64,000 nucleotides of DNA, from contig OZ251232.1 of NCBI GenBank assembly GCA_965240325.2, forward strand, positions 1,550,001 through 1,614,000, given 5' to 3'. The notes beneath the pieces are model-generated. The model searched no databases. It was not told the origin of the DNA and saw nothing but the letters and a program-made list of their open reading frames with translations. Shown piece after piece: positions 10,567 through 54,368 of the stretch (position 1 is the stretch's first letter; every line of letters starts with the position of its first letter). A program made the position numbers and the translations under genes. The DNA is from Rebecca billardiae RCC1528 (taxonomy: Eukaryota; Protista; Haptophyta).

Positions 10567-10712
10567 CTGCGCACGATGGCGGCCGATCGGCGGCGAACGT
10601 GGAGACGGTTGGTTGGCGCGGATAATGTTCGTCAAAGTTGAAAGTGATGCGTCTGCAGCTGGAAACTTGGCTCCGTGTTAGAACACGGAGCACTTCTTGT
10701 CGTGAGGAGGCA

Positions 10713-11813: not shown

Positions 11814-12910
11814 TTCCCCGCCGAACGCGCGTCCACGAGCTAACGCTGGCTGGGGCAGCACGGGCGCCGCGCGCGCCCCCGGCCGCACCACGCGCGGCCC
11901 ACGCGCTGCACGCAGCCCGTCAGATTTCGTATCGCCTGTCGGCATTACGTCGTAAAAACAATAACGGACGTCGCTGTCAATGGCACACTGCAGTCGCGCG
12001 GGCTGCCAGCAATAATCCGGGGGGCTCGTCGCGGGCGACGCGGCCGAGACCGAGTCGGGGACCCTACTGGGCTACTGGCCCGGGCCGGCTGCGGCGCGGC
12101 CCGCTGAGTGCAGCCAACTAGCCCAACTACTGTACGTGCGGCGGCCGCGTGCGGTCAGTCAGAGTCACACACATTCGGTCACCGCCGTGTCGCGGTCGCC
12201 TGCTCATGCTGAGTCGACAGCTGAGTGCTGTCGGTCACGGACACTCCCGCTGACAGGCTGGCAGGCTGATGACAGTGTCAGTCGGACTCCGTCTCCGTCT
12301 CCGGTCTGACTCTGAGCTTCACCACTATCAGACTCAGTACTTATACTCTCCACATGATTCGGATGAGCCTGACGAGTGACAGTCTGGCGGGCCGGACTCG
12401 GTACGAGTTCACGGTATAGTCGATCGCCCGGACCGGTCACGGTGACTGACCCGCTCTGCGCTCGAACTAGTCGAAGGCGTCGTCACTCACTAGCTTATAA
12501 TATATACTCATTCGTCACGGACTCAGTCTCACGGAGTCAGCACGATATAGACGATCGGGATCGTTCCGGGGATCGGACATCGGAATATGGCACTGTATAT
12601 GCCGTCACGGATGAATCTACTGCGGGAATATAAGTCGTCAGATAAATTACGTACTCAGCAGAACAATAAGTCGTAGTAATGTTCAACGTTAACGGGAACG
12701 GGATATGACGGATGAATCAGCACGACGCCGACGGTCTCAACGGTTGGTCGTTGGAAGCGCCGAAGCGCGGCGCCGGCCATGGCGGCCATCAAACCGCCCG
12801 CGCGAGCCCGAGGCGGAGCCGGACCGGGACCCTTGGCCTTGATAGTTGATGCCGCTTACGGGGTCGGACGATAAGCTTACGCTTGGGTGATCGTGTGTGC
12901 ACGCGCAGCC

Positions 12911-14559
12911 TCACGCCCCCCGCGCGGGCGGCTCATCGTCGGCGTCGGCCGCGTTGCCCTCGGTCTCGATCTCCTGCAGCGCGACGAGCGAGCGGAGCGC
13001 GAGCTCGTGCTGCCGGAAGGTGTTGGTCAGGAACGCAAGGCGCTCGCCGACCGAGCCGATCTCGAGGAGCTGCTGCTGCGGCGCGCCGGGCATGAGCGAC
13101 GAGGCGACGAACGAGAGGCGCTGTGCGCGGCGCACTGTCGGGTACGCCTCGTCAAAGGCCCACTCGCTCGTGGCGACCGCGGCCGAGCCCTGCTGCATAC
13201 AGTGCTGGTGCTCCCACCCGCCCGGAGGCGGCGGCGGCTGCAGCTGCAGGACCTGGTCCGGCAGCAGCAGCGAGCGCTTCGACGAGAGCTTCGAGAGCAG
13301 GAACCACACCGAGTCGATGGTGAGCCACAGCTCCCACTCCGCCGTGCGGATGCCCTCGTTGAGCGAGGTGACGCGCGCGTTGCCGAGTGCGCCATCGGCC
13401 GCCGAGCCCGCCTGTTGCGCCTGCGCCGCCAGCTGCGACAGGCAGCGCGCAGCGGCCGAGGCGGCGAGCACAACGTGGACTGGCTCTGACGCGCGCGGCG
13501 CGCCGTCGGCGCCGCCGTCCCCCTCCGTGGTCGCTGCCCTCGCCGCCGCGTCGGAGACGCGCGCATCCTCCGCGCCGCCGCGCGACTCGGCGTCGCCGGC
13601 CGGTGGGTTGCCAACGCCAGCTGGGCCGTCCGCTTCCCAGCCCGCGGGCGCGTCCGCGGGCGCGCCCCAGCGCATGTGCGCGAGCTGCGCCGCCTGCGAG
13701 GCCGCGGCCTTGGCCAGCGCGTTCGCCTCGCTCGCCAGCGCCATCGTGTCCACCGTGCGGTTCATGCGCACCAGCTCCGTCACGCCAAACTTGAAGCTGC
13801 CAATCCGATCAGAGCATTCATACTCACCCCAGGTGCGCGCAGTCGCGGCCGAGGCGGCGACCGCGACACGGCGGACCACCTGCTCGGCGAGCGTGCCGTT
13901 GAGCCAGCCGCTCGCGCGCGGGAGCGAGCCGAGCGCGTGCACGGCGAGATCCAGATGCGTCGACACCTCCTCGCTGTCCGGCAGCAGCTGCACATCCGCG
14001 AAGCGGAGGCTGTCGCGCGTGCGGCTGCGGAGCACCTGCCACGCCGTGGCGCGCGCGCGCGTACGCGCGGCGAGCGGTGCGGTGAGGCGAGAGCAGCGGC
14101 AGCGGCGCACGCTTGGGGCAGGGCGCGTGCGCCAGCGGGCCGTACCTGCACGCGCGCGCGCGCCTGCATCACCACGGCCACGCCGTGCTCGAGTCGCTCG
14201 TCCTCGACCGTGAAGAAGCGCACCAGCGTGCCGACGGACGAGTTGGCGGTGACGCGTGCGACCTCGACAGGCGAGTCATGCATCTGCCACCAGCTGCTGA
14301 CCTCAACACTAGCGCGCTCCTGGAAGCCTGGGAGCAGCGGCCGCTCGGAGACCCACAGCGGCAGATTGTCGATCTCCGAGCTGTAGTCCATCATGGCCGT
14401 CGTTGTGCGTGCCGCGCGTGGCACGCGCGCCGCCACCACCGCTAGTCGCGCCAGGGGCGGCGAGGAGATCCTGCGAGCAGGCATTGCGAGCGGCTCAGCG
14501 GGCTCCATGCCAAGGGCGATGATCAGCGTGCTGCACAGGGCACGCCTCGCCGTCGTCAT
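12911..14559 (-). CDS. Putative LON peptidase substrate-binding (N-terminal) domain-like protein; intron 14036-14145
   Basis: LPLWVSERPLLPG start and QRLSFVASSL...QQQLLEIGSVGERL end resemble LON_substr_bdg. A GT-AG intron joins two ORFs in frame. Confidence 0.5.
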
Positions 14560-19555: not shown

Positions 19556-21144
19556 CTAGCGCTGGGCGCGTCCGATCTGCACGCCGATCGCGAGGCCGGC
19601 CAGGACAGCTGCAAGGCAGAGGCTCGTCGTCGACGCGACGCGCTTGATCGAGGCCACACGCGACGAGCGTGCATTGGGCGGGTCGAGCGCGAGGGTGGAC
19701 GAGTCGACGAAGAACGGGCAGTTGAAGCTCACCGCGTCGCCTGCCCGCCGCTGCCACGCCGGCCACACGCGGCAAGAGAGCGGCTTGCGCAGCCGCATCG
19801 CCATGCTGGCCACGTCGCAGTACAGTGCAGAGAGTTGGTCGACAGAAGCGTCGCCGGGGACGGCGACAGTGTCGATGCCGGTGCCGCAGACGGAGGAGTT
19901 GAGCAGCAGCGTGTCTATCGAGAGCGCGCCCTCGCGGCCAAGCCGCGCGAGCCCGTCGTCCTCGGTCTGCGGTAGCACTGCACGCAGTGCGCGCGCGCGC
20001 ACGCGCACGGAGAGGCGCGGCTGTCAGCGCGCAGCGCGATGCGCCGTGCTGCTTCCGCAGTGCGCGCGCGCGCGCGCAGAGGGAGCGCGGCGAGAAGCTG
20101 GCGCCATCGCGGCGGCGGCGACGGCGCGCGCGCACTGAGCCCGCAGTACCCGACCAGGCGGTACGGCATGCGCTTGAGCACCGAAGTGACGAGCGCCGAG
20201 AGCGTGAGCGTGCCCGCGCCTCCGAACGGTCCGAGCCCGATCGAATCAAACGCGTTCACGATTGATTCCTCGGGGTGCGCAGCGGAGGCGACACTCGGGT
20301 CGCAGCCGGCGTAGGTGACGCCGGGGGAGAGCGCCTCGAGCGCCATGCCCAGCTGGTCAAGCTGCCGCAGCGTGCCGTCGAACTCGCGCTCGAGCTCGGC
20401 GGCGGCGAGGCCGAGCACGGCTGTCTGAGGCTGCGCGCTGCTGGGCAGAGCGTCTGCCTGCGCGCGCGCTGCGCCAAAGGCGCGCACGAGCAGGTCCGAG
20501 TTCTCGCACGCGAATGCGAAGGCGGGGGTGGACCACGTCGAGTCCGGTGGGTTCACCCGGCGCCCCGTCATGCCCGGCGCGGGCGAGAACGCGCCCGGGA
20601 AGAAAGGTCCTCCAGGCTCTGTGTTGCAGACAACTGTCAGCTTGAACGCGTACGGCGCGCCGGACAGCGGGCCGCTCCGGATCTCGCCGCGCGTCGAGCG
20701 CGTGGCGTCATTCAGGTCGAGTAGGAGCTGCGCACACCGCCGTGCGTGCGCCACGTCGGGCAGCCCCTCCGCCGAATGCCTCGCCTGCAGGCACACAAAC
20801 AGGTGCTCCGTGGATGCGAGCGCGCGCACGAGCACGCCGTCGTCCAGGCGCTCGTGTACATTGCCAAGCGAGGCGATGACGGCGACGCCACCGCCGACGC
20901 GCTGCTCGATGCGGCTGCACAGGGCGTCGAACTCCTTCAGCTGCGCGAGCGCCACGTCGGCGTCCTGGTCGAGCCACTGCTCGCACGTGTTGGTCGCGAT
21001 GCGCACCATCTGCAGCCCATGGCCGTCACGCTTGAGCTCGGCGATGGCCGTGTCGAAGAAGCTCACCGCCGCCTCGGCGCTCGCGCAGATGAGGTCGAAT
21101 GATGACGCCGAGATGAAGTAGGTCACGGCTCGTACCTTCGGCAT
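19556..21144 (-). CDS. DUF711/UPF0210-family protein with C-terminal hydrophobic tail; intron 19978-20135
   Basis: KVRAVT, VRIATN, PFFPGA, GYCGLMLPQTED (after splicing), SSVCGTGIDTVAVPGD and KPLSCR. Confidence 0.8.
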
Positions 21145-21363
21145 CCCGCACGGCCTGCGTCTCAAATCTCGCGCCCGTTCGACTCGTCGAAGTGTTTTGC
21201 TTCAGGCCTTGGTCAGACTGACCAAGGGCGGTACCGCCCTTGGACTGACGAACCGCCCTTTCTTCGAGCCAGCTGCGGTCGCTCGGAGCGTGCGGAAAGC
21301 ACTGCACAAGATCCGGACTCGCAGAGATCCGTCGTGCGCCAGCAGGCGCATCTGTTTGAAGGC

Positions 21364-22425
21364 ATGGCCGCGGCGGGAGACCGATCGCGGCGCGGAGATG
21401 GGGCGCGCCCGCGCCGGCTCGTGATGATCAACGGCGCGCTCGTGCTGCAGTGCCTCCTCATGAGCGCGCCGTCCAGCTCGGTGGCGGCCGCCGCGTCCGC
21501 CGATGCAGGCGAGGCCTCCGGCGCGCGCTCTCTCCTCCGGTCGCTGCGCGCTGTCGACTGGAGCCGACCGCTTCGCCTTGGGCGCAAGGGGGGGCGGCGC
21601 GAGCTTCCGCAGCCGACGTCCGTCGCGGCCACCCCGAGTCCGCCCTCGTCATCTTCCCGACGGAGACGGCCGCAGGCGTGGTCCTTCCAGCGCTCGGCGC
21701 TGGCGGTCGGTCTCTTTGCGGCGGGCGGCCTCGCTTCCGAGGCGATTCAGTACGCCAACACGGCGCTGCTGGTGGCGTACCTGCGCCGGCGCACGGGGAA
21801 GGACGTGGTCGGGCTGGTCGACTCGATCGTCGAGCGCTCGCGCGCCATGGGCCTCTCGGCGTACGCGCTGTACCTGCTCGCGATCGTCTCGTTCCAGGTG
21901 GTGCCTGTTCAGCTCTCCGCGTTCATCGGCGTGTTGTTTGCCGGGCTGCTCTTCGGCGTGTGGCGCGGCACGCTGCTCGTGTCGTTCGCGTGCTCGGTGT
22001 CGGCGTGCCTCTCCCGCGTGATCGCCAAGCGCGCGCAGCGCCGCTTCCCCTCGCTCGAGCTCTCGTCCATCGGCACACACATGGCCGCCCTCGAGCGGCA
22101 GCTCGCGCAGGCGCCGTTTAGTACGCACGTGCTGGCCATCACGCTGCTGCGGATGAGCCCGGTCTTCCCATTCGTGCCGACGAACTACCTGCTCGGGCTG
22201 ACGAGCGTGCGCCCGCTGGCGCTCTTCGTGGGCACCTTCATCGGCTCGATCCCGATGCAGGCGGCGTACATCTCGGCTGGCGTGCTCGGCGCCGCCACAA
22301 TAAACGGCGGCGTGCGCGTACCGCCTGCAATCGCGGCCGTCGGCTTGCTCGCAACCGTGCTCGCATGCTGGCTGATGGGCAAGCTGGCGACGCAGGCGCT
22401 CGATGGTACGCTGGTCGCGGCGTGA
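21364..22425 (+). CDS. Second VTT/DedA (SNARE-associated) membrane protein (start uncertain)
   Basis: GLLFGVWRGTLLVS, LLRMSPVFPFVPTNYLLGLT and FVGTFIGSIP. Confidence 0.88.
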   Translation: MAAAGDRSRRGDGARPRRLVMINGALVLQCLLMSAPSSSVAAAASADAGEASGARSLLRSLRAVDWSRPLRLGRKGGRRELPQPTSVAATPSPPSSSSRRRRPQAWSFQRSALAVGLFAAGGLASEAIQYANTALLVAYLRRRTGKDVVGLVDSIVERSRAMGLSAYALYLLAIVSFQVVPVQLSAFIGVLFAGLLFGVWRGTLLVSFACSVSACLSRVIAKRAQRRFPSLELSSIGTHMAALERQLAQAPFSTHVLAITLLRMSPVFPFVPTNYLLGLTSVRPLALFVGTFIGSIPMQAAYISAGVLGAATINGGVRVPPAIAAVGLLATVLACWLMGKLATQALDGTLVAA

Positions 22426-28176: not shown

Positions 28177-31044
28177 CTACGATGCTGCTGCAGCGCTGCC
28201 GCTGCTGCTGGTGCTGCCGCTGCTGCTGCCGCTGCCGCTGCCGCTGCCGCCTTTGTCGACGGCGCACGCGTCGTGGCCGACATGCTGTGCGGCGCACGGG
28301 GTCGCGGCGACGTCGAGCTCGCCTGTCGGCTGCGATGTGTCGTGTTCCCAGCTGGGCGAGCTGCTGAGTGAGCTGCTGCTGCACTTCAGCATCGAGCCGG
28401 CGACGTCGTCGCCGGTGGCCGGGAGGGGCAGCGACGAGAGAGGGCCAGCCTCGTGCGCGTCGGCTTCGAGGCCATGCCTCGCCGTGAAGGCCGGCGAGTT
28501 GGCCGGCGAGTGGCCCGGCGAGAGCAAGAGGGGCGTCGGCGTGAACCGCTTGCACCACAGCTCGTAGACGAGCTCGCGCACCTCGGCGCGCTTGTAGGGC
28601 GTTTTGGGCATCGCGCCGTGCGCGCGCTTGAGGTACGCGACGCGGTCCTCGTCCGAGTCGTTGGCCGAGCGGACGATCATGAGCGTGCGCGCCTCCTCGT
28701 CGGGGCTGAGCATGCGGCGCAGCTGCGCGAGCTTCCACGAGCCCGAGACGATCTCAATCCCCGCGCTCGTCTGGTCGAGCTCGAGGTTCTCGTCGCAGAT
28801 GATGAACACGCGCTGCTCGGCCGTAGTCTCGCGGATGTAGTTGAGCAGTGTGATGGCGAGGTCCGGCAGCTCGGCTGGCTCCCCGAGCAGGTGCGTCTTC
28901 TCGGGGCTGGCGCCGAGGTCGCGGAGCATGCGGCGCATCACGGTGCGCTGCAGCTTCGAGTCGTCGATCGCGATGGCCACGCAGTCCTCAGGCAGCGAGA
29001 AGGCGGCTGCCGCGGCCTCGCCGCCGCTCAGCCGCGCGCCCGCGAGCAGAGCCCGGTCGATCGGCAGCACGTCCGGCACGCGCAGCTCGAACACCGTCGC
29101 CTCGGGGGAGAAGCGTATGGAGGGGCTCGCGCCGAGCGCGCGCGCGCACTGCGCGATGACCCAGCCGCCGACCCCGCCGTTCCGCCGGTGCTTCACGCCG
29201 CGCATGTCCGCCGAGCCGTCGCTGGCCTGCGCGGCGCTGTGCAGCTTGCTCCCCTTCTTGAAGACGGCTGAGGGCGCGTCCGCGTCGGCGCAGAGCTGCG
29301 CGTGGCCCGGCCCCGGCGCGTTGGTGATGGAGAGCAGCAGGTCGGCGGGCCCGCCGGCGCCGCGCGGCTCCACCGCCACAACAACCCGCACCGGCCGCTC
29401 CGCCGCGCCGAACTGCAGCGCGTTGCTCAGCGCGTGCCGGAAGATGGTGTGCAGCAGGAGCGGGTCGGACGCGACGTGGGGCAGCGCGCTCGCCGCGTGC
29501 ACGAGCTGCACCCGAGGGTTGTCCGAGGAGAAGACGGAGTGCAGGTGGACGCGCTCGCGCTTCGCGACGTACTCGCCGCGCGTCGCGTCGCGCGCGCTCA
29601 CCTCCGCCGTGATCGAGCGCAGCGTCGTGTGCAGCATCGTGTGCAGCTCCGTCAGCTCGGGCTCGTCGACGCCGCGATCGCGCATCGCGGCGGTGAGCTC
29701 GAGCGCGGAGATGACGGCGTTCTTGAGCTCGTGCCTCTCGAAGTGGTTGGCCTCCTCGTCCTTGACGCGCTCGATCTCGGCCGCGCGGCGCTCGAGCTCC
29801 TCCGCCTTCTCGCGCTCGCGCTTCGTCACGTCGCGCACCACGATCACGAGGAACTGCTCGTCGGCGTGCCGGTTGACGCGCACCTCGCACGTGAGCGAGT
29901 TGCTTCCGCCCGTCACGCATGTGAAGTGCGGCTGCGCGCTCGTCCACGCGGCGAGGAGGAGGCGGTCGACGTCCGTGTCGTCGGTGAGGTCGTGCGTGCG
30001 CCCCGAGATCCACTCGGCCGCGCCGCGCACGAGCGACCCGATCGAGCGCGACGCGACGGAGTGGTACCGCTGCCCGTCCTTCTGCGAGACGATGATGGCG
30101 TCGGTCGCGTGCCGCCACGCGAGCGACATCTGACCCTGCAGCTTGGCGAGCCGGTGGCCGGCGAGCTGGCGCTTCGTCGTGGAGTGCGTCTCGGTGAGGT
30201 ACACGGCGTAAATCATCTTGCCCGTGCAGTCGAGCACCGCCTCGACCATGCCCAACGCCGCCGGCTGCTGCAGCCAGGCGCCGAGCGCCCACACGACCGG
30301 GAAGAGGGTCCACAGCGCGCAGCAGAGCCCGAGCGTGCGGACCGCGCGCGCGTGCTGCGTGGCGAGCGCCTTGTCGGCGGGCGGCGTCTGGTTGCGCCGG
30401 GTGTACCAGCGGGCAAAGATCCCGCCGTAGCACGCGAACGAGCCCGTCGCCAGCACCAGCCACGCCGTTGTCGACGGCGCGAACGGCAGCGCCATCCCGA
30501 ACAGAATGCATGCCGACTGCGTGCACGCAAAAAGGACGGCACCGCGCACGGGCGCGGAGGCGAGCGACTCGACGATGAGGCACATGACGAAGAGGCAGAT
30601 GGTCCACTCGGCGTAGCGCACGAGCACCACCGGCGTGCCCAGCACCGGATCAATCCGCACGGGGACGGGCAGGAGAGCCATGATTGCGTTGGACAGGCCG
30701 GCAATCCCGTGCACAACAAAGACGAGCACCTCGGCCTGGGAGCAGGAGCTGAGGCTGCGCTCGCCGATGGCGATGAAGCGGGCGATGCATACCGCCACGA
30801 GCGCCGTGGCGCACAGCCCGCACGCGGAGCGCTCCTCGTCGCTCAGCAGCTCGGCGCCGCCAAACTGCATCACCGCCACGACAATCATCACCCACGCGCA
30901 GAAGGCCACGAGCGCAAACGTGCTGGCGTCACGGTTCGACATCGCGCCGTTGGGCTCGACGGGCCCACCGAACATACCCGCCAGCTGGTCCGTTGACGGC
31001 GTGAGCCGCCGTTCTGTGGAGGGCCGGCGAAATTGCAGCGACAT
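28177..31044 (-). CDS. Type-1 (microbial) rhodopsin-PAS-histidine kinase-receiver hybrid photoreceptor, intronless
   Basis: Eight hydrophobic helices, with helix C RYAEW, helix F LWTLFPVVWALG and helix G LDCTGKM (Schiff-base Lys codon 30217-30219). PAS ends in VRDVT. H-box RHELKN; N-box HALSNALQFG; G2 GGVGG. Receiver motifs AIDDS, CDENL, RSAND and MPK. Confidence 0.9.
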   Translation of the reverse strand: MSLQFRRPSTERRLTPSTDQLAGMFGGPVEPNGAMSNRDASTFALVAFCAWVMIVVAVMQFGGAELLSDEERSACGLCATALVAVCIARFIAIGERSLSSCSQAEVLVFVVHGIAGLSNAIMALLPVPVRIDPVLGTPVVLVRYAEWTICLFVMCLIVESLASAPVRGAVLFACTQSACILFGMALPFAPSTTAWLVLATGSFACYGGIFARWYTRRNQTPPADKALATQHARAVRTLGLCCALWTLFPVVWALGAWLQQPAALGMVEAVLDCTGKMIYAVYLTETHSTTKRQLAGHRLAKLQGQMSLAWRHATDAIIVSQKDGQRYHSVASRSIGSLVRGAAEWISGRTHDLTDDTDVDRLLLAAWTSAQPHFTCVTGGSNSLTCEVRVNRHADEQFLVIVVRDVTKREREKAEELERRAAEIERVKDEEANHFERHELKNAVISALELTAAMRDRGVDEPELTELHTMLHTTLRSITAEVSARDATRGEYVAKRERVHLHSVFSSDNPRVQLVHAASALPHVASDPLLLHTIFRHALSNALQFGAAERPVRVVVAVEPRGAGGPADLLLSITNAPGPGHAQLCADADAPSAVFKKGSKLHSAAQASDGSADMRGVKHRRNGGVGGWVIAQCARALGASPSIRFSPEATVFELRVPDVLPIDRALLAGARLSGGEAAAAAFSLPEDCVAIAIDDSKLQRTVMRRMLRDLGASPEKTHLLGEPAELPDLAITLLNYIRETTAEQRVFIICDENLELDQTSAGIEIVSGSWKLAQLRRMLSPDEEARTLMIVRSANDSDEDRVAYLKRAHGAMPKTPYKRAEVRELVYELWCKRFTPTPLLLSPGHSPANSPAFTARHGLEADAHEAGPLSSLPLPATGDDVAGSMLKCSSSSLSSSPSWEHDTSQPTGELDVAATPCAAQHVGHDACAVDKGGSGSGSGSSSGSTSSSGSAAAAS

Positions 31045-31475
31045 GGCGCTGCCGCGCGTTGTCAGGCAAAGCGCCCGCCCGGCTGTGGCGGCTGGATTCT
31101 GTCGCATTCGCAAGTGCTGGAGATGCGGGCCAATTCGGTTGCTTGGTGAAGAAGTTAAGACTTGATTACTTAGTGCTTACCGACGACGGTCGACCTCGGG
31201 GGTTTAATTGCAAGTATGATAATGAGGGAATGACTCTGAATATTATGGGCGGCGGAGACTACGGACGAAGCCGATACGCGAACCGGTTACGAGTTGCGAC
31301 CACGTTGGGTGATTGAGAGAACACTGCCCAATCTTCGCTGGAAGCGTGAATCGGATTATGTCTCGTCAAGATTCTGTTGCCGTTGAACGACCTTGATTCA
31401 TAATCTCGTCAATTGGGGTACTTTCACGGTACCCCTAGATACGGTTTGACGTAAGTTTGAACGTCGTGGTCAGGG

Positions 31476-35444: not shown

Positions 35445-35958
35445 TGTCAAAAGCCCAAGGCAGCCATTGGCGCCATTCCCCAGCTCGAGGTTTCAATCTC
35501 AAGGCGCTGAGCAATTCTAAGCGCCACCATGCTGAGGATTCATTCCAATTCAAAACCTTATCATCGACCTCAACTGTCGGTTTTATTCACGTCCAGTGCA
35601 CAAATTCATTCATCATCATTCATCGTGCATTTCATAATGGCCAACAAGCCCAACAAGCGTCGCGGAACAATCCAGGAATCAAAGCTCCTGAGATGTTCTC
35701 AAGCCTTCGCAGGGCAATGCACTATCAGATCATTCCGAGAACGTGCCTTCGCAATCAGAAGCCGAGAAGCATCTCCAAACTTTCTAATCACGAAAGTTCT
35801 GGGATGAGTCCTTCGTGAGAACCCTACAAAAGTTTTTTCTCAGCGATCTGGAGCTGCACCAGCTACACAACAAAACCGAACTGATCAGCAAAGCAGGGAG
35901 ACCCCTGCGCCACCATCGCCAAAGAGCGAACCTCCGCCAGCGCACGAAGTGCCAATCA
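35445..35958 (+). repeat. 5' LTR
   Basis: Starts tgtcaaaagc and ends gccaatca; no differences from the 3' LTR seen by eye. Confidence 0.97.
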
Positions 35959-38900
35959 TGAGCTCATGGGGGCTTCACGGCGGACAACGTGGGAACACAC
36001 CGTGCGGACGCGCGCGGTTTCACCCGAACTCGAAGGTCGACATCCGCGAGGATTTGACCGACGACACCACCAGACCGGCGGCGCAGCAGCCAAAGCGCGC
36101 GTCACGCGACCGACCGGAACGCAACCACTCTCGACCTTCGCAGCAGCCGCGAGGCGAGAGGACGCGTACTTCGAACGAGCAGCTGCGCTCGTTCAAGAAC
36201 CTCGACTACCGCTTCGGACATCCCCCGCGGAGCGAGCAAGACCACAACCTCAGCGGCCGCGACGGCAAAGCCCAGCGACAACGCGTACTACAGGTCAAGC
36301 GCCGCAAGTGGCGCTTCAAGGTCAACAAGGACTCCAACCACGCACCCGACGACGGGGCGTGGAGAGCGGAGCGCACAGGGCCACCCAGCGCCGCGTCTGC
36401 GCTGCGGGACCCGCTCCAGCCGCGGGGTCACAACCACCAAACCTCGCAACGCGAGGCCAAACGCGGCGCGCGCACGCGCACCGCGCACGCGCAAAGTATC
36501 CCCACGCTGATTCCCAGCGCGCGTCAGACACAGGGACGACAGTCGGCGACCGACTCGATCCCATATGTCCCCTCCTTCACGCTCCAGTTTCTCCCTTCCG
36601 TCTATGCGAGCGGCTGGGACTCTACGCCCGCCAACAACAAGGGCGCTGCGACAACGCCTAACCAGTGGAGTGAGATTGATGACGATGATCCAGCGTCGTG
36701 CCAGCCATGCGACAATCAGTCGTGCACATCGAGGCATTGCCTTCTTGAGTGCAACATCTGTGGGATGGGCAGAGTCTGCAGCTACCGATGCGCAGACGCC
36801 ATCCAAGTTCAGCATCAGCTCGAATGTGAGCAGATCATCCAGTTTGCAGCGATGAACGACGGGATTGACATCGATGATGATGGCATTCACGTCCACCAGC
36901 AGGACGGACCCGTCGCAGCGGCTGATCGCCGCAGCCTGAGCGTTGTGAATGACGCAGGCGCCAGCCTCGATGATATTTGCCCTCGGCGGCCATCGGGAGG
37001 CTTCATCGCAGCAGCCGCAGAGCGGCAAGGTCACAACTACACAGTTGGAGACTATGTGCGGGAAAGGGACGAGCTTCACCAAAGCAAGTTTGATCTCATG
37101 TTCCATTGTAACGACGCACTCCTACAGCCAGGTGTCGCATGCTTACTGCACGACGAGTTCTATGGGCTGACTTCTGAAGCAGGCGAGGGACACCCGCCAG
37201 CTGACGACGGTCCACCTGGACATGGCACAAACTACCCGCCTGCCGCGACTGGCGCCGACAACAGCGCACAGCAGAGCAGCAATGGGGACGAGTCCTCTAC
37301 GTCGGACATTGACAGCTATGCCACAGCAGAGGACCACATTGAGACAAGCTCGCTCAACGCGTCACCGCGAACGCGCAGAAATGGAAGCGAAGCTTGCACC
37401 TACTTGCCCGACGCACACGCAATGATGGCTGTACAGACAAGCCAGCCCGGCGTCGGAAGCTACAAGCTGAATTTCTTCACAATCAAATCGAAAATGGCTA
37501 TCCACAGAGCGATCAAGGACGCAGTCACCGAGGTCAAGGCTTCCTACAAGGGAAGAGCGACCGACACTACGTCGTCCATGGTCACCCTCGTCGAGGCCAG
37601 GCTCTCCGGATACGCGCTGGCCGAGGCCGCCGTGTGGACAGCCGAAATTGCTATTCGGGAACCTTACGCAACCGCATTCGCAAACATGGACGCGGACACC
37701 ACCATCATGCAGATGACGATCGTCTACGAGCGATCGGTGGAAGTACTTTTCAAGCGTATCAAGGACATGATGCTGCCAAGTCTCTTTTCGTACCTCGAGT
37801 CGAAAAGGCACATCGTGAACCCGAATGAGAATTTCCTGAATTTACATACTCTGCTCGAAATCTTCGAGCACGAGCTGAACGTATCGACCATGTCGGAGCT
37901 CCGGGCTGAGTTCAAGAAGCTCTACCCGGACCGACCGACCCCGGTGAGCGGCCCTGAGATGATCAAGCAAACGGTGGAGATGGTACGCGCATCACGCTAT
38001 CGAGAGCTAGACGACGCCACACTCCTCGTGTTCAAGCTGTACAATGGGATGCACGAGCACCCAGAGGTCTACTCGACCGTCATCTCTATTTACGGTTCAA
38101 TGTCGCCCCAGCAATGCGTGGCGCAGACCGAACAGCTCACCGCCCAGATCGAGGACGCATACAGGCGTTGGACTCAGTCGCCCAAGGGACGACAGGCAAC
38201 GCAACGTGACCCCAAGCGGGGCGGTCCCGCGCACGCTCTCAATACTGAGGAGGCGGACCGCCGACAACCAGCAGTCACGTGCTCGCATTGCGGACTACGC
38301 AATCACACCGCAGAACGGTGCTGGAAGCTACATCCAGACTTGCGGCCACCCAGGCCGCCCGGTGCACCAAAACAGGGCAACTTCAAGCCGCCCGCCGAGC
38401 CCGGCAGGTATGACGGCAAGTTCATCAAGGTACCTCCGCCCCCCAAGTGGGCGGGGAGGCCGCGAGCCCAGATGGTGCAAGACGAGGACATCGACCCGGA
38501 ACCCGATGACGCAGATCTCGAGCCGACGCAATACGCGTATCTGGACTCGGGCGCGTCCCAATCATTTGTCGATATCAACCTCGGCCTGCTACACAATGCT
38601 CATCCGATCAGCATGTCTGTCAAGGTCGCCAAGCGCGACATTGAGCTACACGCATCCAAGGCAGGCGACATGTACGTATACTTACTCGACGCCGACTCAG
38701 ACACAACCGTGCCGGTGTGCCTGGAAAACGTCGTCGGAGTCGAAGATCTCGATACTACTCTCTTTTCAGTCAACGCGTTCGCCGCGGCCGGAATGGCTGT
38801 GGTGTTCGACGAACGACCATACATCCGCATCGGCCCCAAGAGGGTTCATTTGCGCCCCGACAACACTGTCGGATTCAAGGCAGTCGTACCCAAGGCCGAG

Positions 38901-41900
38901 ACAGCCATGCCGGCCACCACGGACGACATGCCACCAGACGTCGACCCGATCAAGAACGGGCGAAAGATCACGCTCTGGCAATCCAGACTAGGATACGCCG
39001 ATATCAAGCGTGTACGCGCAACCTACCGCGCGAACGACAAGATGTCGGAGGCATCGCCCTGCTCGTACCAGCCCTCCGACGTTGCCAAGTTCAAAGCTAA
39101 GCCGTTCCCGGGCACACGTGAGAGGACAACTCGACCGCTCGAGATGCTCCACAACGATGTCATCGGGCCCATCAACGGGCTGCCCGCCAAGACTCCAAGG
39201 TGGGGAACTCTATTCATCGATGATTTTTCCGGATACATGCGCTTCTACGACATGCAAAACAAGGCTGAAGCGCCGGAGAAGCTCGACCTCATGGCCAGCG
39301 AGATGGGAGCCAACTCTCTATCCGCCACCATGCAGAACAAGGGCATCGCCGGATGCACCATTCACCTCGACGGAGGCCGAGAGTTACACTCAAAGAATTG
39401 GAACCGAGTCCTTCGCAGGTACGACATGCTATGCAACTACATGTCGCCCCCCCACACGCAGCAGCTGAACGGCGTCGCCGAACGTGGCCTCGGAGTCATC
39501 ATGAATGACGCCAGGACAATGCTGTACCTCTCAGGCGTACACCACAAATGGTGGCATTGGGCAGCCAAGTGCGCTGCCGCGCAACGCAACCTGATGAGCA
39601 AGCATCCTACCAGCGATGGCAAGCTGGTTTCACCGCACGAGTTGATGTTTGGCACCTCGCCCGGGCCATTCCTGCAAAAGCTGAGAGTCTGGGGCTCGCC
39701 CTGCATCTACCTCGTACAGTCGATCAACAAGCAGAACAAGCTACTCCCGCGCGCGCGGGAGGGCATCTTATTGGGATACGGATTTGACGGTATCTTCGAG
39801 CGAGGCGCCATCAAGCGATCGCACGGATACATCGTTTTGAGTGCCGACGACGGGAAAATCGTCATCACTCGGCATGTCAAGTTCAACGAGCAAGTCATTT
39901 TGGATCGAATCTCTACGCATTTCAAGGAGATCCGCGAATTTCGGGACCCCCTGCTGGCGTGGAGCGCTCGGCGACCTCCTCAAGGTGCAGATGCTGGTAA
40001 GACCCATGACAGCAACACCATCGAGGAGGGCGACGAAGAGTTTGCCAGCAGCAGCAGCGACGCCGACAGCGGCTCCGAGCGCGGAGGAGACGATCCACCA
40101 TCGCCGGACGAGAAATCAGACGACGATGACGACGAGGATGACGGGGACGGCCCCGACGACGACGAGAAGGGAGATGACGGCGACGACGACGGTGATGAAG
40201 ACGGCCCCGGAGCTGGAGGCGGACCATCGCCCAGCAACGCGCCGCCGCAGCCGAAGCAGCCTCCTCCCTCCGCCGATCGTCGCCCACAGCGGACCCGCAA
40301 CATGACTGGCAAGTCATACTTCCCGTCGACGCGGCGCGCGCGCGCGCGCGCGCAGCTCGCGCAGCTCGCATCAGATATCCCGGTACCTACATCGTTCAAG
40401 GAAGCGATGGAGAGCAAGCAAGCATCCGATTGGACAAGGGCTATCATGGAAGAATACGAGGCCCACGACAGACTGGGCACATTCACGCCCGTCGTTGTTC
40501 CCAAAGGGAAAGCAATTATCCCATCGAAGCTGGTCTTCAAGGTCAAAGCCAATCCAGATGGTACCATCGAACGGTACAAGGCAAGATTGGTTGGTCAAGG
40601 CTTCCGCCAGATTCAAGGAGTCAATTACGACGAGGTGTTCTCGCCTACTATCCGGTACGAGAACGTACGCCTCCTATTGGCACTGACGACGGAGCTACGA
40701 ACACCAGAAAGACCTTGGATCATCCACTCCGCGGACGTGAGTACGGCGTACCTCCAAGCCCCTTTGGAGGACGGCCTGAAGATCTACACTACGCTACCCC
40801 CGCTGTACCCGTGTACTCTCAAGCCACCCGAGGGGCATGTGGTCGCGGCCGACTGGGATATGGCCCTTCCAGGATTTAAGCAGAGCGGCCGACGATGGCA
40901 CCTCCGCCTCAGCCAGAAACTGCGAGAGAAAGGATTCAAAAAACTCGCACAGTCGGAGTGCATCTTCGTCCGCATCTCCGGAGACATCATCGACGTCATC
41001 GCAGTGTACGTGGACGATCTGCTTATTCTGAGCAGCTCCCCCGACAGCGCAAGGCCCAGCTCGATTATTGAGGAAATTCGAAAAGAATTTACCCTCCGGG
41101 ATTTGGGACCAGCAACGACGTTCCTGGGCATGAATATCACCCAGGGGCCCAAGTCGACGACTATCTCCATGTCACAGTACATCACCGATCTCCTCAAGAG
41201 GCACGACATGAGCGACATTACGCCCGTCGACAACCCATGCAGATCGGCAGCAGAGCAACCGACATCAATCGAGACAGACGATTCATCATCGTGCTCGTCG
41301 GAGGAATCAAAGACCTACCGAGCAATCGTCGGAGCGCTACTATTCATCATGAACACCTGCCGACCCGACATCAGCTATGCAGTCAACATGTTGGCAAGGT
41401 ACATGGCAAGCCCAAGTTCGAACGACCTTAAAGGTGCCAAGCGAGTGCTCAGGTACTTGGCCGGGACAAAGAATTCCGGCATCACTTTCAAATCAACACC
41501 TACTCAGCCACGGACGGAGATGTTTGTGGACTCGGATTGGGCCAACGATACAAAGGATCGCCGCTCGACAGGAAGCTATATCTACTTCCACGCAGGCGGC
41601 CCAGTATCGTGGCGCACCTTCAAGCAGTCAATCACAACCCTCTCATCATGTGAGGCCGAATATGTCGCTCTCGCGGAAGGATCCAAAGAGGCAGTTTACC
41701 TACGCGACATCATCAGCGATATTCTCAATATTCCCAAGACGCCCATTGTGATCCATGAGGACAACAAGGGGGCGATTGATCTCTCGAAGAACAGCATTCA
41801 TCATAAGCGCACCAAGCACATCGACGTACGACACCATTTTATTCGAGATTGTGTCGACCTCGGTGCAGTCAACATTATCAAGGTACACACATCGGAAAAC

Positions 41901-41984
41901 ATCGCCGATTGTCTTACCAAGGCGCTACCCAAGGACAAATTTGCAAAATTCCGAGACATCATGGTTGCACCAGTTTCGAATTGA
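35958..41984 (+). CDS. Copia Gag-Pol polyprotein (single ORF, about 2008 aa) with an N-terminal MYND-like zinc finger
   Basis: Gag CSHCGLRNHTAERC knuckle; protease YLDSGAS; integrase LHNDVIGP, HLDGGRE and NGVAER; RT YKARLVGQG and VYVDDLLI; RNase H VDSDWA, SSCEAEY, EDNKGAI and ADCLTK. Confidence 0.96.
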   Translation: MSSWGLHGGQRGNTPCGRARFHPNSKVDIREDLTDDTTRPAAQQPKRASRDRPERNHSRPSQQPRGERTRTSNEQLRSFKNLDYRFGHPPRSEQDHNLSGRDGKAQRQRVLQVKRRKWRFKVNKDSNHAPDDGAWRAERTGPPSAASALRDPLQPRGHNHQTSQREAKRGARTRTAHAQSIPTLIPSARQTQGRQSATDSIPYVPSFTLQFLPSVYASGWDSTPANNKGAATTPNQWSEIDDDDPASCQPCDNQSCTSRHCLLECNICGMGRVCSYRCADAIQVQHQLECEQIIQFAAMNDGIDIDDDGIHVHQQDGPVAAADRRSLSVVNDAGASLDDICPRRPSGGFIAAAAERQGHNYTVGDYVRERDELHQSKFDLMFHCNDALLQPGVACLLHDEFYGLTSEAGEGHPPADDGPPGHGTNYPPAATGADNSAQQSSNGDESSTSDIDSYATAEDHIETSSLNASPRTRRNGSEACTYLPDAHAMMAVQTSQPGVGSYKLNFFTIKSKMAIHRAIKDAVTEVKASYKGRATDTTSSMVTLVEARLSGYALAEAAVWTAEIAIREPYATAFANMDADTTIMQMTIVYERSVEVLFKRIKDMMLPSLFSYLESKRHIVNPNENFLNLHTLLEIFEHELNVSTMSELRAEFKKLYPDRPTPVSGPEMIKQTVEMVRASRYRELDDATLLVFKLYNGMHEHPEVYSTVISIYGSMSPQQCVAQTEQLTAQIEDAYRRWTQSPKGRQATQRDPKRGGPAHALNTEEADRRQPAVTCSHCGLRNHTAERCWKLHPDLRPPRPPGAPKQGNFKPPAEPGRYDGKFIKVPPPPKWAGRPRAQMVQDEDIDPEPDDADLEPTQYAYLDSGASQSFVDINLGLLHNAHPISMSVKVAKRDIELHASKAGDMYVYLLDADSDTTVPVCLENVVGVEDLDTTLFSVNAFAAAGMAVVFDERPYIRIGPKRVHLRPDNTVGFKAVVPKAETAMPATTDDMPPDVDPIKNGRKITLWQSRLGYADIKRVRATYRANDKMSEASPCSYQPSDVAKFKAKPFPGTRERTTRPLEMLHNDVIGPINGLPAKTPRWGTLFIDDFSGYMRFYDMQNKAEAPEKLDLMASEMGANSLSATMQNKGIAGCTIHLDGGRELHSKNWNRVLRRYDMLCNYMSPPHTQQLNGVAERGLGVIMNDARTMLYLSGVHHKWWHWAAKCAAAQRNLMSKHPTSDGKLVSPHELMFGTSPGPFLQKLRVWGSPCIYLVQSINKQNKLLPRAREGILLGYGFDGIFERGAIKRSHGYIVLSADDGKIVITRHVKFNEQVILDRISTHFKEIREFRDPLLAWSARRPPQGADAGKTHDSNTIEEGDEEFASSSSDADSGSERGGDDPPSPDEKSDDDDDEDDGDGPDDDEKGDDGDDDGDEDGPGAGGGPSPSNAPPQPKQPPPSADRRPQRTRNMTGKSYFPSTRRARARAQLAQLASDIPVPTSFKEAMESKQASDWTRAIMEEYEAHDRLGTFTPVVVPKGKAIIPSKLVFKVKANPDGTIERYKARLVGQGFRQIQGVNYDEVFSPTIRYENVRLLLALTTELRTPERPWIIHSADVSTAYLQAPLEDGLKIYTTLPPLYPCTLKPPEGHVVAADWDMALPGFKQSGRRWHLRLSQKLREKGFKKLAQSECIFVRISGDIIDVIAVYVDDLLILSSSPDSARPSSIIEEIRKEFTLRDLGPATTFLGMNITQGPKSTTISMSQYITDLLKRHDMSDITPVDNPCRSAAEQPTSIETDDSSSCSSEESKTYRAIVGALLFIMNTCRPDISYAVNMLARYMASPSSNDLKGAKRVLRYLAGTKNSGITFKSTPTQPRTEMFVDSDWANDTKDRRSTGSYIYFHAGGPVSWRTFKQSITTLSSCEAEYVALAEGSKEAVYLRDIISDILNIPKTPIVIHEDNKGAIDLSKNSIHHKRTKHIDVRHHFIRDCVDLGAVNIIKVHTSENIADCLTKALPKDKFAKFRDIMVAPVSN

Positions 41985-42944: not shown

Positions 42945-45700
42945 TCAGAGCCGCGCCTTGAGCAGCTCGGCGCGCGCGACGGTGCGCGCGTGCACCTCGT
43001 CAGGCCCGTCCGCGAGTCGGAGCGTGCGCGCGGCGGCGTACGCGGCGGCCAGCTCAAAATCCTCGCTCACGCCCGCGCCGCCAAAGATCTGGACCGCGCG
43101 GTCGATCACGGTGCACGCGGCGCGCGGCGCGGCCAGCTTGATCAGCGCGATCTGCTGCGCAGCCGCGCGGCTGCCCACCGCGTCGATCGCGTGCGCCGCG
43201 CTGAGCGTGAGCAGGCGCGCGCTGTCGAGCTCGGCGCGCGACTGCGCGATCGCCTCCTGCACGCTCGACTGCGCAACGCGCCGCGATGCGCGTGGGCGCG
43301 CGGCGGAATCGCGCACGGCGCGCGAGGGCGGAGGGCGGCCGTGGGCTGAGTGCGCGCGCGGCCCGAAGGGCGGTGCGGCGGGCCGCGCATCGAGCGCACG
43401 CCGCTGGGCGGCGCGCACGGCGGTGCCGGCCAGCACGTCTCCGCTCATCCGCGCGACAGGCGGCCACGGAAAGGGCGCGCAGCGCCGGCGGCGCGGGGCG
43501 CGGGGCGGCGCGGCGACCTCTGAGTAGCCACAACGGCGCGGCGCGGCGCGCACACCTTGTGAGCAAGGGGCTCGCCGAAGGCGTGGCGCCGCTTGGCGCG
43601 CGCGCACATCGCCTCGAGGCAGCGCTCGGCGAGGCCGAGCACGCGCATGCAGTGGTGCACGCGGCCGGGCCCGAGCCGCGCCTGCGCCATCTCGAAGCCG
43701 CGGCCCTCGCCGCCGAGCACCGCGTCCGCACCGACGCGCACGCCGCTGAAGACAAGCTCGCAGTGGCCGTGCGGCGCGTCGTCGTACCCAAATGTCGTGA
43801 GCGCGCGGCGCACGCAGAGCCCCGGCGACTCCATCGGGACCAGCAGCACCGTGTGCGCCGCGTGCCCTCGGCGCGCGCCGCCGCCAGAGCCGCCAGAGCC
43901 ACCATCGCCCTCCTCCTCCATGCGGCCGACGACGAGACACAGTCGGCAGCGCGGGTCGCCAGCGCCACTGACCCACCACTTGGTTCCGCTCAGCTCGTAC
44001 CCGCCGCCGCCCGGCAGCCGGCGCACGCGCAGCGCGAGGTTGGTCGGGTCGGAGGAGGCGACGTCCGGCTCAGTCATCGCGTAGCACGATCGCAACCGCC
44101 CGTCCAGCAGCGGCGACAGCCAGCGCGCCTTCTGCTCGTCCGTGCCGAAGCGTGCCAGCAGCTCCATGTTGCCCGTGTCCGGCGCCGAGCAGTTGCACGC
44201 CTCGGGCGCGAGCTGCCCGATCCGCCCGCTCAGCTCGGCGAGCGGCGCGTACTCGAGCGTCGACAGGCCAGCACCGCCGCGCCCGCCGCGCGCCGCCTCG
44301 CCCGCCGCGCCCTCCAGCTCAGGAGACAGCCACAGATTCCAGAGGCCAGCGGCGCGCGCGCGCGCCTTGAGCCGCTCCACGGTGGCGAGCGGCGACCAGC
44401 GCCGGCCGGCGCGCGTGTTGCGCGCGAGCTCAGCCGCGGCCTCCGCCTCGGCGGGGCCCACCTCGTACTCGAGGAACGCCGCCATCGCTGCGTGCAGCCG
44501 AGCGGCGCGCGCCGAGAGCCGCACCGGCAAGAGTGAAAGCGTCGCTGCGGACGCGGCCGTGACGTGGGCAGGCGGCGAGGTGATCGGATCGGCGGGGCCG
44601 GGCGGCGCGGCGCACGCGACGCGCCAGCCCTCGGCGGCGGTCGCGCGGAACAGCGCGCCCGCCTCCGCGCCGCGCGCGGACGACGCGTTGCCCTGCAGCG
44701 CGCGCGCCAGCACACCCTGTTGGATCGCGGCTAGGCGAAAGGCCGCCAGGGCCTCAAAGAACGCGCGCTCGGCAGGCGCAAGCGGCGGCGCGTTGGCGCG
44801 CGAGGCGTAGCCGCGCGCGAACTCGTCGGCGGTGGGCACGCCGGCGGGCGGGCGGAGCGGCCGCGCCGCGCCCAGCGCCGCGCCCAGCGCCCACTGCGCC
44901 GTCACGTACCCCACGTCCGCGCGCGCGTCACCGAGAGTCGCGAGCTCCCAGTCAAGAACGGCACACACGGACAGGTCCGGCCTGAAGACGAGGTTGTCCA
45001 GGCGGAAGTCGCCGTGGACGAGGGCGGGCGGCGCGGCGTGCGCGAGCGCGTCCATCCCCGCCGCGCGCTCCGCGAGCCACGACCCCAGCTTGGGCAGCTC
45101 GGCCGACGGAGGCTCGCGCGCGGCCGCGAGCGCGCCAGCACCCGCCTCCACCTGCGCCGCCCAGCGCCGCACCTGCCGCGACGCGTAGCCCGCGGGGCGG
45201 CCGAAGCCATCGAGGCCGGCCGCGGCGGGGTCGACGGCGTGGATGCGCGCGAGCACGTCGCACATGCTTGCGTACACCGCGTACCGCTGCGCCGGCGCCA
45301 GCCCGCGCAGCGTCGGGTCGAGGAAGACGAGGCCGCTCACATGCTCCATCAGATAGAACGGCGTGCCGAGCACGGACGCGTCGGCGCAAAAGGCGACGGG
45401 GCGAGGCACGGGCACGTTGGTGTGCGCGTGCAGCGCGCACAGCACGCGGTACTCGCGGTCGACCGCGTGCGCCGACGGTAGGATCGCGCCGCCTGGCTGC
45501 TTGCGCAGCACTAGCGCGCCGCCGCCGCGCGCGCCGAGCTCAAGCCGATAGGTCGGGTTGGACTGGCCGTGCGAGAACTGGCGCACGCGCATCGCGCCAT
45601 CAAAGGGGCGCACGTGCGCGCGGACCCACGCGCCGAGCGCCGCCTCGTCGATCGGCGCGCGCACGCCCTCGTCGAGCAGCTCGTCGGTGCTCGTCGCCAT
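42945..45700 (-). CDS. ACAD10/11 (IBR3-like) phosphotransferase plus acyl-CoA dehydrogenase, probably peroxisomal; intron 43269-43555
   Basis: QFSHGQSNPTY, HGDFRLDNL and LDWEL (APH-like); NCSAPDTGNME, MTEPDVASSD, RLGPGRVHHCMR and LRLADGPDEVH; C-terminal ARL is a PTS1-type tripeptide. Confidence 0.92.
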
Positions 45701-46016
45701 GGAGTCGGCGGGGAGCCCGCGGGATCAACAGCCGGAGCGGCTCCCGAGCTTGCCCGGACGCCACGGGGAGGGGGGCGCTAAACCCGGAGTGGGTTCCACT
45801 TCTCAACTCGCTTCGGTTGGGGCGCTGCATGATTGGCTGAGCTTGGTATGGGGGTAACTTAAGTTCGGCTAATTGTTTTAGGGTTTTTAGTCAAAGCGGC
45901 TGCTCCGTCCACTGTCCAGTCGTCCTCGCAGCCGAGGAGTGCATCTCGTAATCTCGTTCATCACTCTGAGCGCGCCTCGGCGTCGTCGGTGTTCGCCTCG
46001 GTCGTCGCGTGTCATC

Positions 46017-46778
46017 ATGGCGGTGCGGGCATGCGCGCTCGTCATGGCGGTGGTGGTCGCGCTCTTGAGCATGGCGAGCGTGGGTGCATACCAGCTGCCA
46101 GGCCTGCTGCGCGCGAGCGTCGCGCGCAAGAGCGCCTTCATCACGATGCGCGGCGGCGAGGGTAGCAAGAAGGTGATTATCGCCGGCGCGCCCGCCTCGG
46201 GCAAGGGCACGCAGTGCGAGATGATCAAGTCCGAGTTCGGGCTGGTACACCTGTCGACGGGCGACATGCTCCGCGCCGCCGTCGCGCAGGGCACTGACGT
46301 GGGCAAGAAGGCGAAGGCGTACATGGACGCGGGCGACCTCGTCCCAGACGAAGTGATCATTGGCGTCGTGGTCGAGCGGCTCAAGGCGCCGGACTGCGAG
46401 TCGAACGGCTGGCTGCTCGACGGTTTCCCGCGCACGGCGGTGCAGGCCGAGGCGCTGCGCGCGGCGGGCGTCGAGCCCGACGTCGTGCTCTACCTCAACG
46501 TGCCCGACGAGATCCTGGTCGATCGCGTCGTCGGCCGACGCACAGACCCAGATACCGGCCGGATATATCACCTCACGTACGACCCGCCCCCGCCCGAGGT
46601 CGCTGAGCGGTGCACGCAGCGCTCGGACGACACGGCGGAGAAGGCGCTCGTTCGGCTCAAGGCGTTCCACACGCACCTCGGCGCCATCCTCGACACGTAC
46701 AAGGAGATCACGACCGAAGTGGACGGCACGCGCCCCAAGGCTGAGGTGTTCGCAGACGTGCAGAAGGTGCTCAGCTGA
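46017..46778 (+). CDS. Adenylate kinase, probably plastid-targeted
   Basis: GAPASGKGTQC P-loop, HLSTGDMLR, GWLLDGFPRT and GRRTDPDTGRIYH; signal peptide. Confidence 0.95.
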   Translation: MAVRACALVMAVVVALLSMASVGAYQLPGLLRASVARKSAFITMRGGEGSKKVIIAGAPASGKGTQCEMIKSEFGLVHLSTGDMLRAAVAQGTDVGKKAKAYMDAGDLVPDEVIIGVVVERLKAPDCESNGWLLDGFPRTAVQAEALRAAGVEPDVVLYLNVPDEILVDRVVGRRTDPDTGRIYHLTYDPPPPEVAERCTQRSDDTAEKALVRLKAFHTHLGAILDTYKEITTEVDGTRPKAEVFADVQKVLS

Positions 46779-51035: not shown

Positions 51036-51152
51036 CCAGGCTGCCAGCGGCGCGACCGAGCAGCAGCAGACAGCCGCGGTCTAGTGTGTGGCTGCACTGG
51101 CGGCGATGCCGATTCTGACTCTGGTCTTAGAGTGGCGCGTGCCATCACTACG

Positions 51153-54293: not shown

Positions 54294-54368
54294 TAAGACG
54301 CTACTAGTCAATTATTATTTATGATAAACAATCAGGCACCGGGCAGCGAGTGCAACGTGGCCCCACGT

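Follow-up and report, generated by a model that had tools for sequence, protein, structure and literature searches.

In HKR1 (Cop5) and 2c-Cyclop of Chlamydomonas and Volvox, an eight-transmembrane-helix (8-TM) type-Ib opsin is followed by a histidine kinase and then by a response regulator. The kinase of Chlamydomonas 2c-Cyclop1 lies "directly behind the opsin" (Lys298 and His352 are 54 residues apart), kinase and receiver are about 500 residues apart, a guanylyl cyclase comes after them, and 2c-Cyclop operates as a light-controlled, ATP-dependent phosphorelay (PMC6284317). In the Mamiellophyceae (Ostreococcus, Micromonas) the protein known as Rhod-HK or Ot-HKR has the order Rhod-HisKA-HATPase-REC, with HPT on a separate protein (PMC12704426; PMC10662239); this "noncanonical HKR" is cyclase-free and is thought to signal through the separate HPT to response regulators (PMC12704426). 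Here we describe a gene on the minus strand (28177-31044) of a 64,000-nucleotide stretch of the haptophyte Rebecca billardiae RCC1528 (contig OZ251232.1, positions 1,550,001 to 1,614,000; the window), which encodes a microbial rhodopsin followed by a PAS domain, a histidine kinase and a receiver. On balance we consider it probable that the product is an 8-TM enzymerhodopsin-type photoreceptor, built as a rhodopsin-PAS-hybrid histidine kinase, which has lost the HPt domain usual in its family and hands its output on to a partner, either a separate HPt, a response regulator or a paralogue that still carries the domain.

The Rebecca protein differs from 2c-Cyclop in that Lys276 and His438 are separated by 162 residues spanning the PAS domain, the receiver is close to the kinase, and the cyclase is absent. 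With Ot-HKR/Rhod-HK it shares a rhodopsin, a kinase and a receiver without cyclase, whereas Ot-HKR/Rhod-HK lacks a PAS domain and is built from HisKA, HATPase and REC domains of the ordinary kind (a comparison by description only) and is hosted by Mamiellophyceae rather than by haptophytes and diatoms. The original prediction had presented the combination of an inserted PAS domain and a missing cyclase as a different architecture. There is indeed no cyclase here, but a cyclase-free plan was already known from Ot-HKR/Rhod-HK (PMC12704426). The PAS domain does set the protein apart from the HKR/2c-Cyclop type of Chlamydomonas, but it is not private to this gene and recurs throughout the family.

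The nearest solved rhodopsin domains, in sequence as well as in fold, are those of Rh-PDE from Salpingoeca rosetta (7cj3/7d7q) and of bestrhodopsin (7pl9), which resemble the Rebecca protein in having eight transmembrane helices, an Arg-x-x-Glu-Trp motif in helix C and a seventh helix (TM7) that continues into a cytoplasmic helix; their output is a phosphodiesterase or a bestrophin channel, in contrast to the two-component kinase found here. Residues ~300-660 find their best structural matches in the PAS/LOV-histidine kinases YF1, SB2F1, VicK, WalK, ThkA and the Brucella LOV-HK, which likewise have a PAS core, a D-(I/V)-T motif, a coiled-coil helix and a DHp-CA kinase. The LOV-kinase chimeras, ThkA and Brucella LOV-HK are soluble and sense their signal in the PAS or LOV domain itself, whereas the PAS domain of the Rebecca protein has no LOV motifs, lies downstream of a membrane rhodopsin and is probably a relay element.

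Domain architecture of the predicted protein

The gene is a single uninterrupted open reading frame (ORF) of 955 codons, running from an ATG at 31044, from which residues are numbered, to the stop codon at 28177-28179. Signs of unspliced introns were sought in the AlphaFold2 model and in the family alignment, where we found no internal gap and no low-confidence insert, and the protein is co-linear with its relatives over residues ~36-836. The relative from Diacronema lutheri is likewise intronless (JAGTXO010000019.1, a single exon at 10001-13243 of the retrieved stretch). Counted from a TTG, the open frame extends over 978 codons (28177-31113, minus strand). The ATG at 31044 is the second in frame, and because an alternative upstream ATG at 31105-31107 would add 21 residues (976 in total), the start codon is a predicted one with two candidates. 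The gene has a G+C content of 66-71%, which drops to 54% in the downstream region at 26-28 kb. The observation of one uninterrupted ORF was confirmed, and the positions previously given for Lys276 (30217-30219), His438 (29731-29733) and Asp751 (28792-28794) were all exact.

AlphaFold2, run with a 42-sequence family alignment, gave a full-length model with a mean predicted local distance difference test (pLDDT) score of 78.9. The model consists of an extra N-terminal helix (TM0, residues 37-61), seven transmembrane helices at 69-~290 of which the last runs to 312, an alpha/beta domain (316-405), and two long DHp helices at 407-456 and 462-488. The CA domain then spans 497-660 and the receiver, with a (beta-alpha)5 fold, 689-833, ahead of a disordered end (837-955). 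When the full model was compared with the PDB by Foldseek, the top matches were PAS/LOV-histidine kinases (WalK, VicK, YF1, SB2F1, ThkA and Brucella LOV-PAS-HK) over 390-480 columns. Language-model features of the whole protein resembled those of PAS hybrid kinases, and a structure search of the ESM Atlas returned bacterial hybrid kinases only.

TM0 (30862-30936) was modeled as a helix with a pLDDT of ~95 and, as in other 8-TM enzymerhodopsins, precedes a seven-helix microbial rhodopsin core (residues 69-290; 30175-30840). The alignment to the Rh-PDE transmembrane domain (7d7q) included the TM0 of that protein, the TM-score by target being 0.69, so that the 8-TM layout with a C-terminal enzyme domain was found here too; the location of the N-terminus in the cytosol is a predicted topology. 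Pfam Bac_rhodopsin (PF01036) matched residues 79-287 with E 4.2e-9 and 36.6 bits, above the curated cut-off of 24.6, and the family profile matched bestrhodopsin 7pl9 at E 2e-11 and Rh-PDE at E 4e-8. By sequence, the nearest solved rhodopsin was the transmembrane domain of Salpingoeca Rh-PDE (E 1.3e-7), which has the RYAEW motif in common, followed by fungal, cyanobacterial and archaeal rhodopsins. A feature search of the ESM Atlas with the rhodopsin part was uninformative, the best score being only 0.79. The profile match, the model and the likeness to an 8-TM protein agree with the extra helix and seven rhodopsin helices originally read from the sequence.

The helix C motif RYAEW (30604-30618) contains Arg143, Glu146 and Trp147, at the positions of Arg82, Asp85 and Trp86 of bacteriorhodopsin (BR), and these residues were present in 42, 41 and 39 of the 42 family members, respectively. 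The helix G motif DCTGK (30217-30231) provides Asp272 (BR Asp212; Asp or Glu in 40 members) and the Schiff-base Lys276 (BR Lys216), which, like Arg143 and Trp245, is kept in all 42. Trp245, Pro249 and Trp252 correspond to BR Trp182, Pro186 and Trp189. From these residues we infer that Lys276 binds retinal, and Glu146, which is also the residue found in Rh-PDE and bestrhodopsin, is the presumed counterion. The BR Asp96 position is occupied by Ile and that of Thr89 by Cys, so the donor of a proton pump is absent. Helix F of the Rebecca protein (LWTLFPVVW) is nearer to the canonical pattern than is the family norm W-T-x-L-V-x-x-Y. A cytoplasmic extension of TM7 (residues 291-312; 30109-30174), modeled as part of one helix at 261-312, forms an A'alpha-like lead-in to the next domain.

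That domain (residues 313-406; 29827-30108) ends in VRDVT and is a PAS domain, as had been suspected. A separate AlphaFold2 model of residues 300-415 reached a pLDDT of 90.9, and its Foldseek matches were short LOV proteins, LOV-HK and LOV-kinase chimeras, FixL and sensory-box PAS domains (E ~1e-4, TM 0.55-0.63); the assignment follows from this fold and these matches. The domain is found throughout the family with motifs of its own (W..SSDVI.IS, SP.F, CE.KV and VVRDISER..RFEA) and is therefore a fixed family module rather than an insertion private to this gene. Its conservation falls on the beta-sheet and flanking helices, and the pocket-forming helical region is short in the Rebecca protein and carries large variable inserts in relatives. 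A role in relay or dimerization would fit this pattern better than ligand sensing, and the earlier suggestion that a PAS ligand might be integrated with light gained no support. Flavin sensing of the LOV type was rejected for this domain, as neither residues 300-415 nor the family alignment contain the GXNCRFLQ motif with its adduct cysteine. Another cysteine, Cys386 (29887-29889), lies on a PAS beta-strand (C-E-x-K-V) immediately N-terminal to Glu387. This Glu is nearly invariant, and the cysteine is conserved in most members.

The C-terminal helix of the PAS domain leads into a linker helix and the DHp four-helix-bundle element (residues 407-488; 29581-29826), for which Foldseek gave matches to WalK, VicK and YF1. 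The H-box RHELKN holds His438, and His438, Glu439 and Asn442 are invariant or nearly invariant among the 42 members, the family motif being RFTRHEVKNGLL. The CA (HATPase) domain follows at residues 497-660 (29065-29556). Pfam HATPase_c matched residues 527-657 with an E-value of 0.007, under its curated cut-off, and gave a weak match in 35 of the 42 members. The N-box is at Asn537/Asn541, the G1 box at N575-A-P-G and the G2 box at G624-x-G626-x-W, and the positions N537/N541, N575-x-P-G and G624/G626 are invariant or nearly so; the G2 box reads GGVGGW in the Rebecca protein versus GDGAW in the family. In the G1 box, whose standard form is DxGxG, Asn575 (29320-29322) replaces the usual Asp. About 90% of the 42 members have Asn here, within the motif V-I-N-x-P-G-x-x-H, and HMMER places the family ViNePG on the VKDEG of the YycG G1 box. 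The model and the family conservation bear out the H-box histidine behind the linker and, apart from the Asn in its G1 box and the weak profile score, the HATPase domain.

The receiver (residues 689-833; 28546-28980) has the (beta-alpha)5 fold with Asp694-Asp695, the phospho-acceptor Asp751 (28792-28794) followed by Glu752, Ser793 and Lys814, all of them invariant or nearly invariant in the 42 members, and matches in AlphaFold DB to the hybrid kinases RpfC and BvgS extend to residues 832-851. Beyond it there is only a disordered low-complexity tail of 119 residues (837-955; 28180-28536; pLDDT ~30), situated where relatives have an HPt-like domain. This tail gave no Pfam or other domain match, and no guanylyl cyclase was found after the receiver. 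The receiver, the low-complexity end and the absence of a cyclase are thus as first described. The last residues ahead of the stop codon are rich in Gly, Ser and Ala and are encoded by a (CGCTGC)n microsatellite with an 18-nt period (28184-28250).

No HPt domain was found: a hidden Markov model (HMM) of the family HPt scored negatively on the tail and had no match in any of the six frames of the window, tblastn of the relatives' tails against all six frames gave no HPt, and the protein has no HxLKG motif. This supports the expectation that this copy needs an external HPt or response regulator. MAFFT placed W899...S904-Q-P-T-G-E-L910 under the family motif W..LHxLKGDL, without statistical support, and this segment may be a decayed HPt remnant in which His became Ser. 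The alternative S-M-L-K-C (884-888) as a decayed HxLKG was dropped because MAFFT aligns 904-910 instead, neither placement having statistical support. As the usual C-terminus of the family is HPt-like, the low-complexity tail points to secondary loss or decay, and we read the Rebecca protein as a derived, divergent HPt-less paralogue.

A family in diatoms and haptophytes

An exhaustive phmmer search against 1.84 billion cluster representatives found 529 relatives with E<=1e-3, of which 133 reached E<=1e-30, with ~27-40% identity and mostly 900-1250 residues long, whereas a word-index homologue search with the whole protein found none and an NCBIfam scan gave nothing useful. The Rebecca protein was tied to the family independently by phmmer, at E 7e-76. 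By blastp about 70 of the 150 best relatives aligned over the rhodopsin too, often in a single high-scoring segment pair from residue ~40 to ~835. The survey for the same architecture was therefore productive, and the Rebecca gene is not a singleton.

The haptophyte members include proteins of Diacronema lutheri (KAG8462663.1) and Chrysotila/Pleurochrysis carterae, and the diatom members those of Thalassiosira pseudonana (XP_002287358.1, "predicted protein"), Corethron hystrix, Rhizosolenia setigera and Cylindrotheca fusiformis. The Chrysotila, Corethron and Rhizosolenia sequences come from transcriptomes, so the family is expressed. Two AlphaFold DB cluster hits, A0A1Z5JZP0 and R1F5G8, match the model over almost its full length; judging by the style of their accessions, they may come from Fistulifera solaris and Emiliania huxleyi. 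The best-scoring relative, that of Diacronema lutheri (1080 residues), is flanked by unrelated genes and adjoins a gene for a 2756-residue product. A quick maximum-likelihood tree of the 42 sequences separated a group of eight (Shimodaira-Hasegawa-like approximate likelihood ratio test, 98), which contains the Rebecca protein and the haptophyte sequences, from 34 others that include every named diatom sequence. The nearest relatives are thus haptophyte proteins, in keeping with the earlier impression that the host is not a green alga.

The retinal-pocket and catalytic set conserved across the 42 members comprises R143, E146, W147, W245, D272, K276, H438, N541, G624/G626, D694/D695, D751, S793 and K814, and with these residues invariant or nearly so the domain match is not due to chance. 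Pfam models detected little of this: Bac_rhodopsin matched 3 of the 42, HATPase_c matched 35 weakly, and HisKA, Response_reg, PAS and Hpt matched none. In sequence the family thus stands apart from the green-algal proteins that Pfam can recognize. Since Pfam is nearly blind to the family, profile-based surveys and standard annotation would have missed it.

Most complete relatives end in an HPt-like domain with an invariant H-x-(L/I/M/F)-K-G motif, 47-92 residues past the receiver. Pfam Hpt matched 5 of 25 such tails weakly (best E 0.002), and a comparison with PDB sequences gave only weak matches to other helical proteins, including a designed four-helix bundle, with CheA P1 at E 1.1; UniRef labels the Diacronema protein "HPt domain-containing". 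HMMs built from the family blocks were scanned over 150 representatives, a procedure that is circular for the 41 seed members, and showed ~49 proteins with the order Rh-PAS-HK-REC-HPt and ~15 with Rh-PAS-HK-REC, the remainder looking like fragments. The Rebecca protein scored 3e-64 (Rh), 1e-55 (HK) and 4e-51 (REC), values that are circular since it is itself in the seed alignment. The histidine is present in 85 of 107 HPt-like domains and replaced in the other 22. The His-less pseudo-HPt domains (P0007, P0008, P0011 and others) have Gln, Arg, Leu or Phe at this position and retain the L-K-G motif.

A survey of eukaryotic histidine kinases listed only three in Emiliania, none of them rhodopsin-bearing (PMC6324907), and a similarity network of ~40,000 rhodopsins published in 2026 contained canonical and noncanonical HKR clusters together with 17 uncharacterized clusters (PMC13739731). 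We found no description of the present family, also when searching by member accessions, in the searchable full-text literature, subscription-only papers being outside its coverage. The family is apparently an undescribed, large and divergent diatom and haptophyte branch of the histidine-kinase rhodopsins. A study of open-ocean protist metatranscriptomes did not detect rhodopsin-histidine kinase transcripts (PMC8017926). Our results indicate that diatoms and haptophytes carry divergent genes of the rhodopsin-PAS-kinase-receiver(-HPt) type by the hundreds.

Proposed phosphorelay and competing explanations

Architecture, fold, conservation of the catalytic residues and membership of the family are as observed above; light regulation and its sign, the kinase activity and the downstream partner are predicted from sequence and model. 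In the model TM7 runs straight into the PAS domain, and the C-terminal helix of the PAS domain becomes the first DHp helix. Light would isomerize the retinal on Lys276, with Glu146 and Asp272 as counterions, and movement of TM6 and TM7 would pass through the TM7 extension and a dimeric PAS domain to the coiled-coil linker. A change in the linker would alter the rate at which the CA domain drives autophosphorylation at His438, and the phosphoryl group would move from His438 to Asp751 of the fused receiver. In the usual form of the family the receiver is followed by the HPt-like domain, which would give a His-Asp-His relay on one chain. With no HPt domain of its own, the Rebecca protein would depend on a partner for its output, be it a free HPt, a response regulator or a paralogue that has kept the domain.

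Several observations weigh against this assignment. The Pfam HisKA, Response_reg and PAS models had no match on the Rebecca protein or on any of the 42 members, so that these domain calls rest on predicted fold and motifs. The gene model is predicted from the ORF and its expression is presumed; one DNA read run covered fragments only, none of them informative on the tail, and a look-up of the exact protein among public gene calls gave no match. The HPt domain is lost and the terminal branch is long (2.59 substitutions per site), which leaves the exact position in the tree unsure. The G1 Asp of GHKL ATPases contacts the adenine amino group, and an Asp-to-Asn change at this box abolishes ATP binding; with this change present family-wide, ordinary ATP-dependent autophosphorylation is not assured. 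The CA domain is nevertheless probably functional, because conservation is strong elsewhere in the nucleotide site, and the Asn in G1 may mean an unusual use of nucleotide.

The long branch and the unusual composition are also what one would see if the Rebecca gene were a decaying or re-purposed paralogue with no relay of its own, which may instead modulate HPt-bearing paralogues as a DHp/PAS heterodimer or with its receiver as a phosphate sink. The tail without an HPt, or with a degenerate remnant at most, the GGVGGW in place of the family GDGAW, and the loss of the histidine in 22 of 107 HPt-like domains of the family could be counted on the same side. All catalytic and retinal-pocket residues, however, are intact across 955 codons, and the rhodopsin, with F-P-V-V-W in helix F, is nearer to the canonical form than that of most relatives; we therefore regard decay as unlikely, though it is the strongest of the competing explanations. 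Less probable still is that the family as a whole lacks a conventional ATP-dependent kinase, its CA domain using another nucleotide or none, and that these proteins act mainly as light-controlled phosphatases or phosphotransfer scaffolds. The nearly invariant Asn575 at the adenine-contacting position would be explained in this way, but strong constraint on the PGxxH motif, on the Asn of the N-box and on the glycines of G2 speaks for a functional nucleotide site, and the H-box and receiver residues are conserved as well.

The tail might also be spliced to a further exon, for instance one for an HPt, or introns might lie within the gene. DNA of ~70% G+C yields many long overlapping ORFs by chance, so the 119-codon tail is perhaps partly non-coding. 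We give an incomplete gene model very little weight, given that the HPt HMM had no match in any frame of the window, that the protein is co-linear with its relatives and has no unexplained inserts, and that the Diacronema relative is intronless. A rhodopsin-PAS-hybrid histidine kinase that signals through partners outside its own chain is the reading we prefer.

For the family as a whole we would go further only tentatively, the balance falling somewhat short of even: it could be a major but unrecognized enzymerhodopsin class of haptophytes and of diatoms, the model species Thalassiosira pseudonana among them, combining an 8-TM rhodopsin, a PAS relay, a one-chain His-Asp-His phosphorelay and an Asn-type nucleotide pocket, and overlooked because Pfam is blind to it. 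If so, dominant marine phytoplankton would own a rhodopsin-based two-component pathway for light sensing that is not in current reviews. Should these proteins prove to be light-regulated, they would add a sensory rhodopsin pathway to groups behind much of marine primary production and supply a natural coupling of a membrane rhodopsin to a PAS-kinase, useful for the study of signal transfer and for the design of optogenetic kinases. They would also pose the biochemical question of a GHKL nucleotide site in which Asn has replaced the Asp that binds adenine. The HPt-less Rebecca protein, as a natural variant, offers a way to study the contribution of a fused HPt.

Surroundings of the gene

Neighboring ORFs in the window encode a DUF711 protein (19915-21165, minus strand), a VTT-domain membrane protein (21334-22425, plus strand) and the start of ribosomal protein L13 (24332-25249, minus strand), the last being probably one exon of a split gene. 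No functional link of these three to two-component signaling was seen. Further along, two inverted repeats of ~1.6 kb (54346-55972 and 59387-61004; 1449 nt at 98% and 171 nt at 97% complementary) are separated by ~3.4 kb and may represent an inverted segmental duplication or else a transposon whose terminal inverted repeats are long. A stretch at 44001-52000 in which G+C content is very high (0.71-0.80, compared with ~0.65 in the remaining window) and an ORF of 2011 codons at 35949-41984 on the plus strand were also observed.

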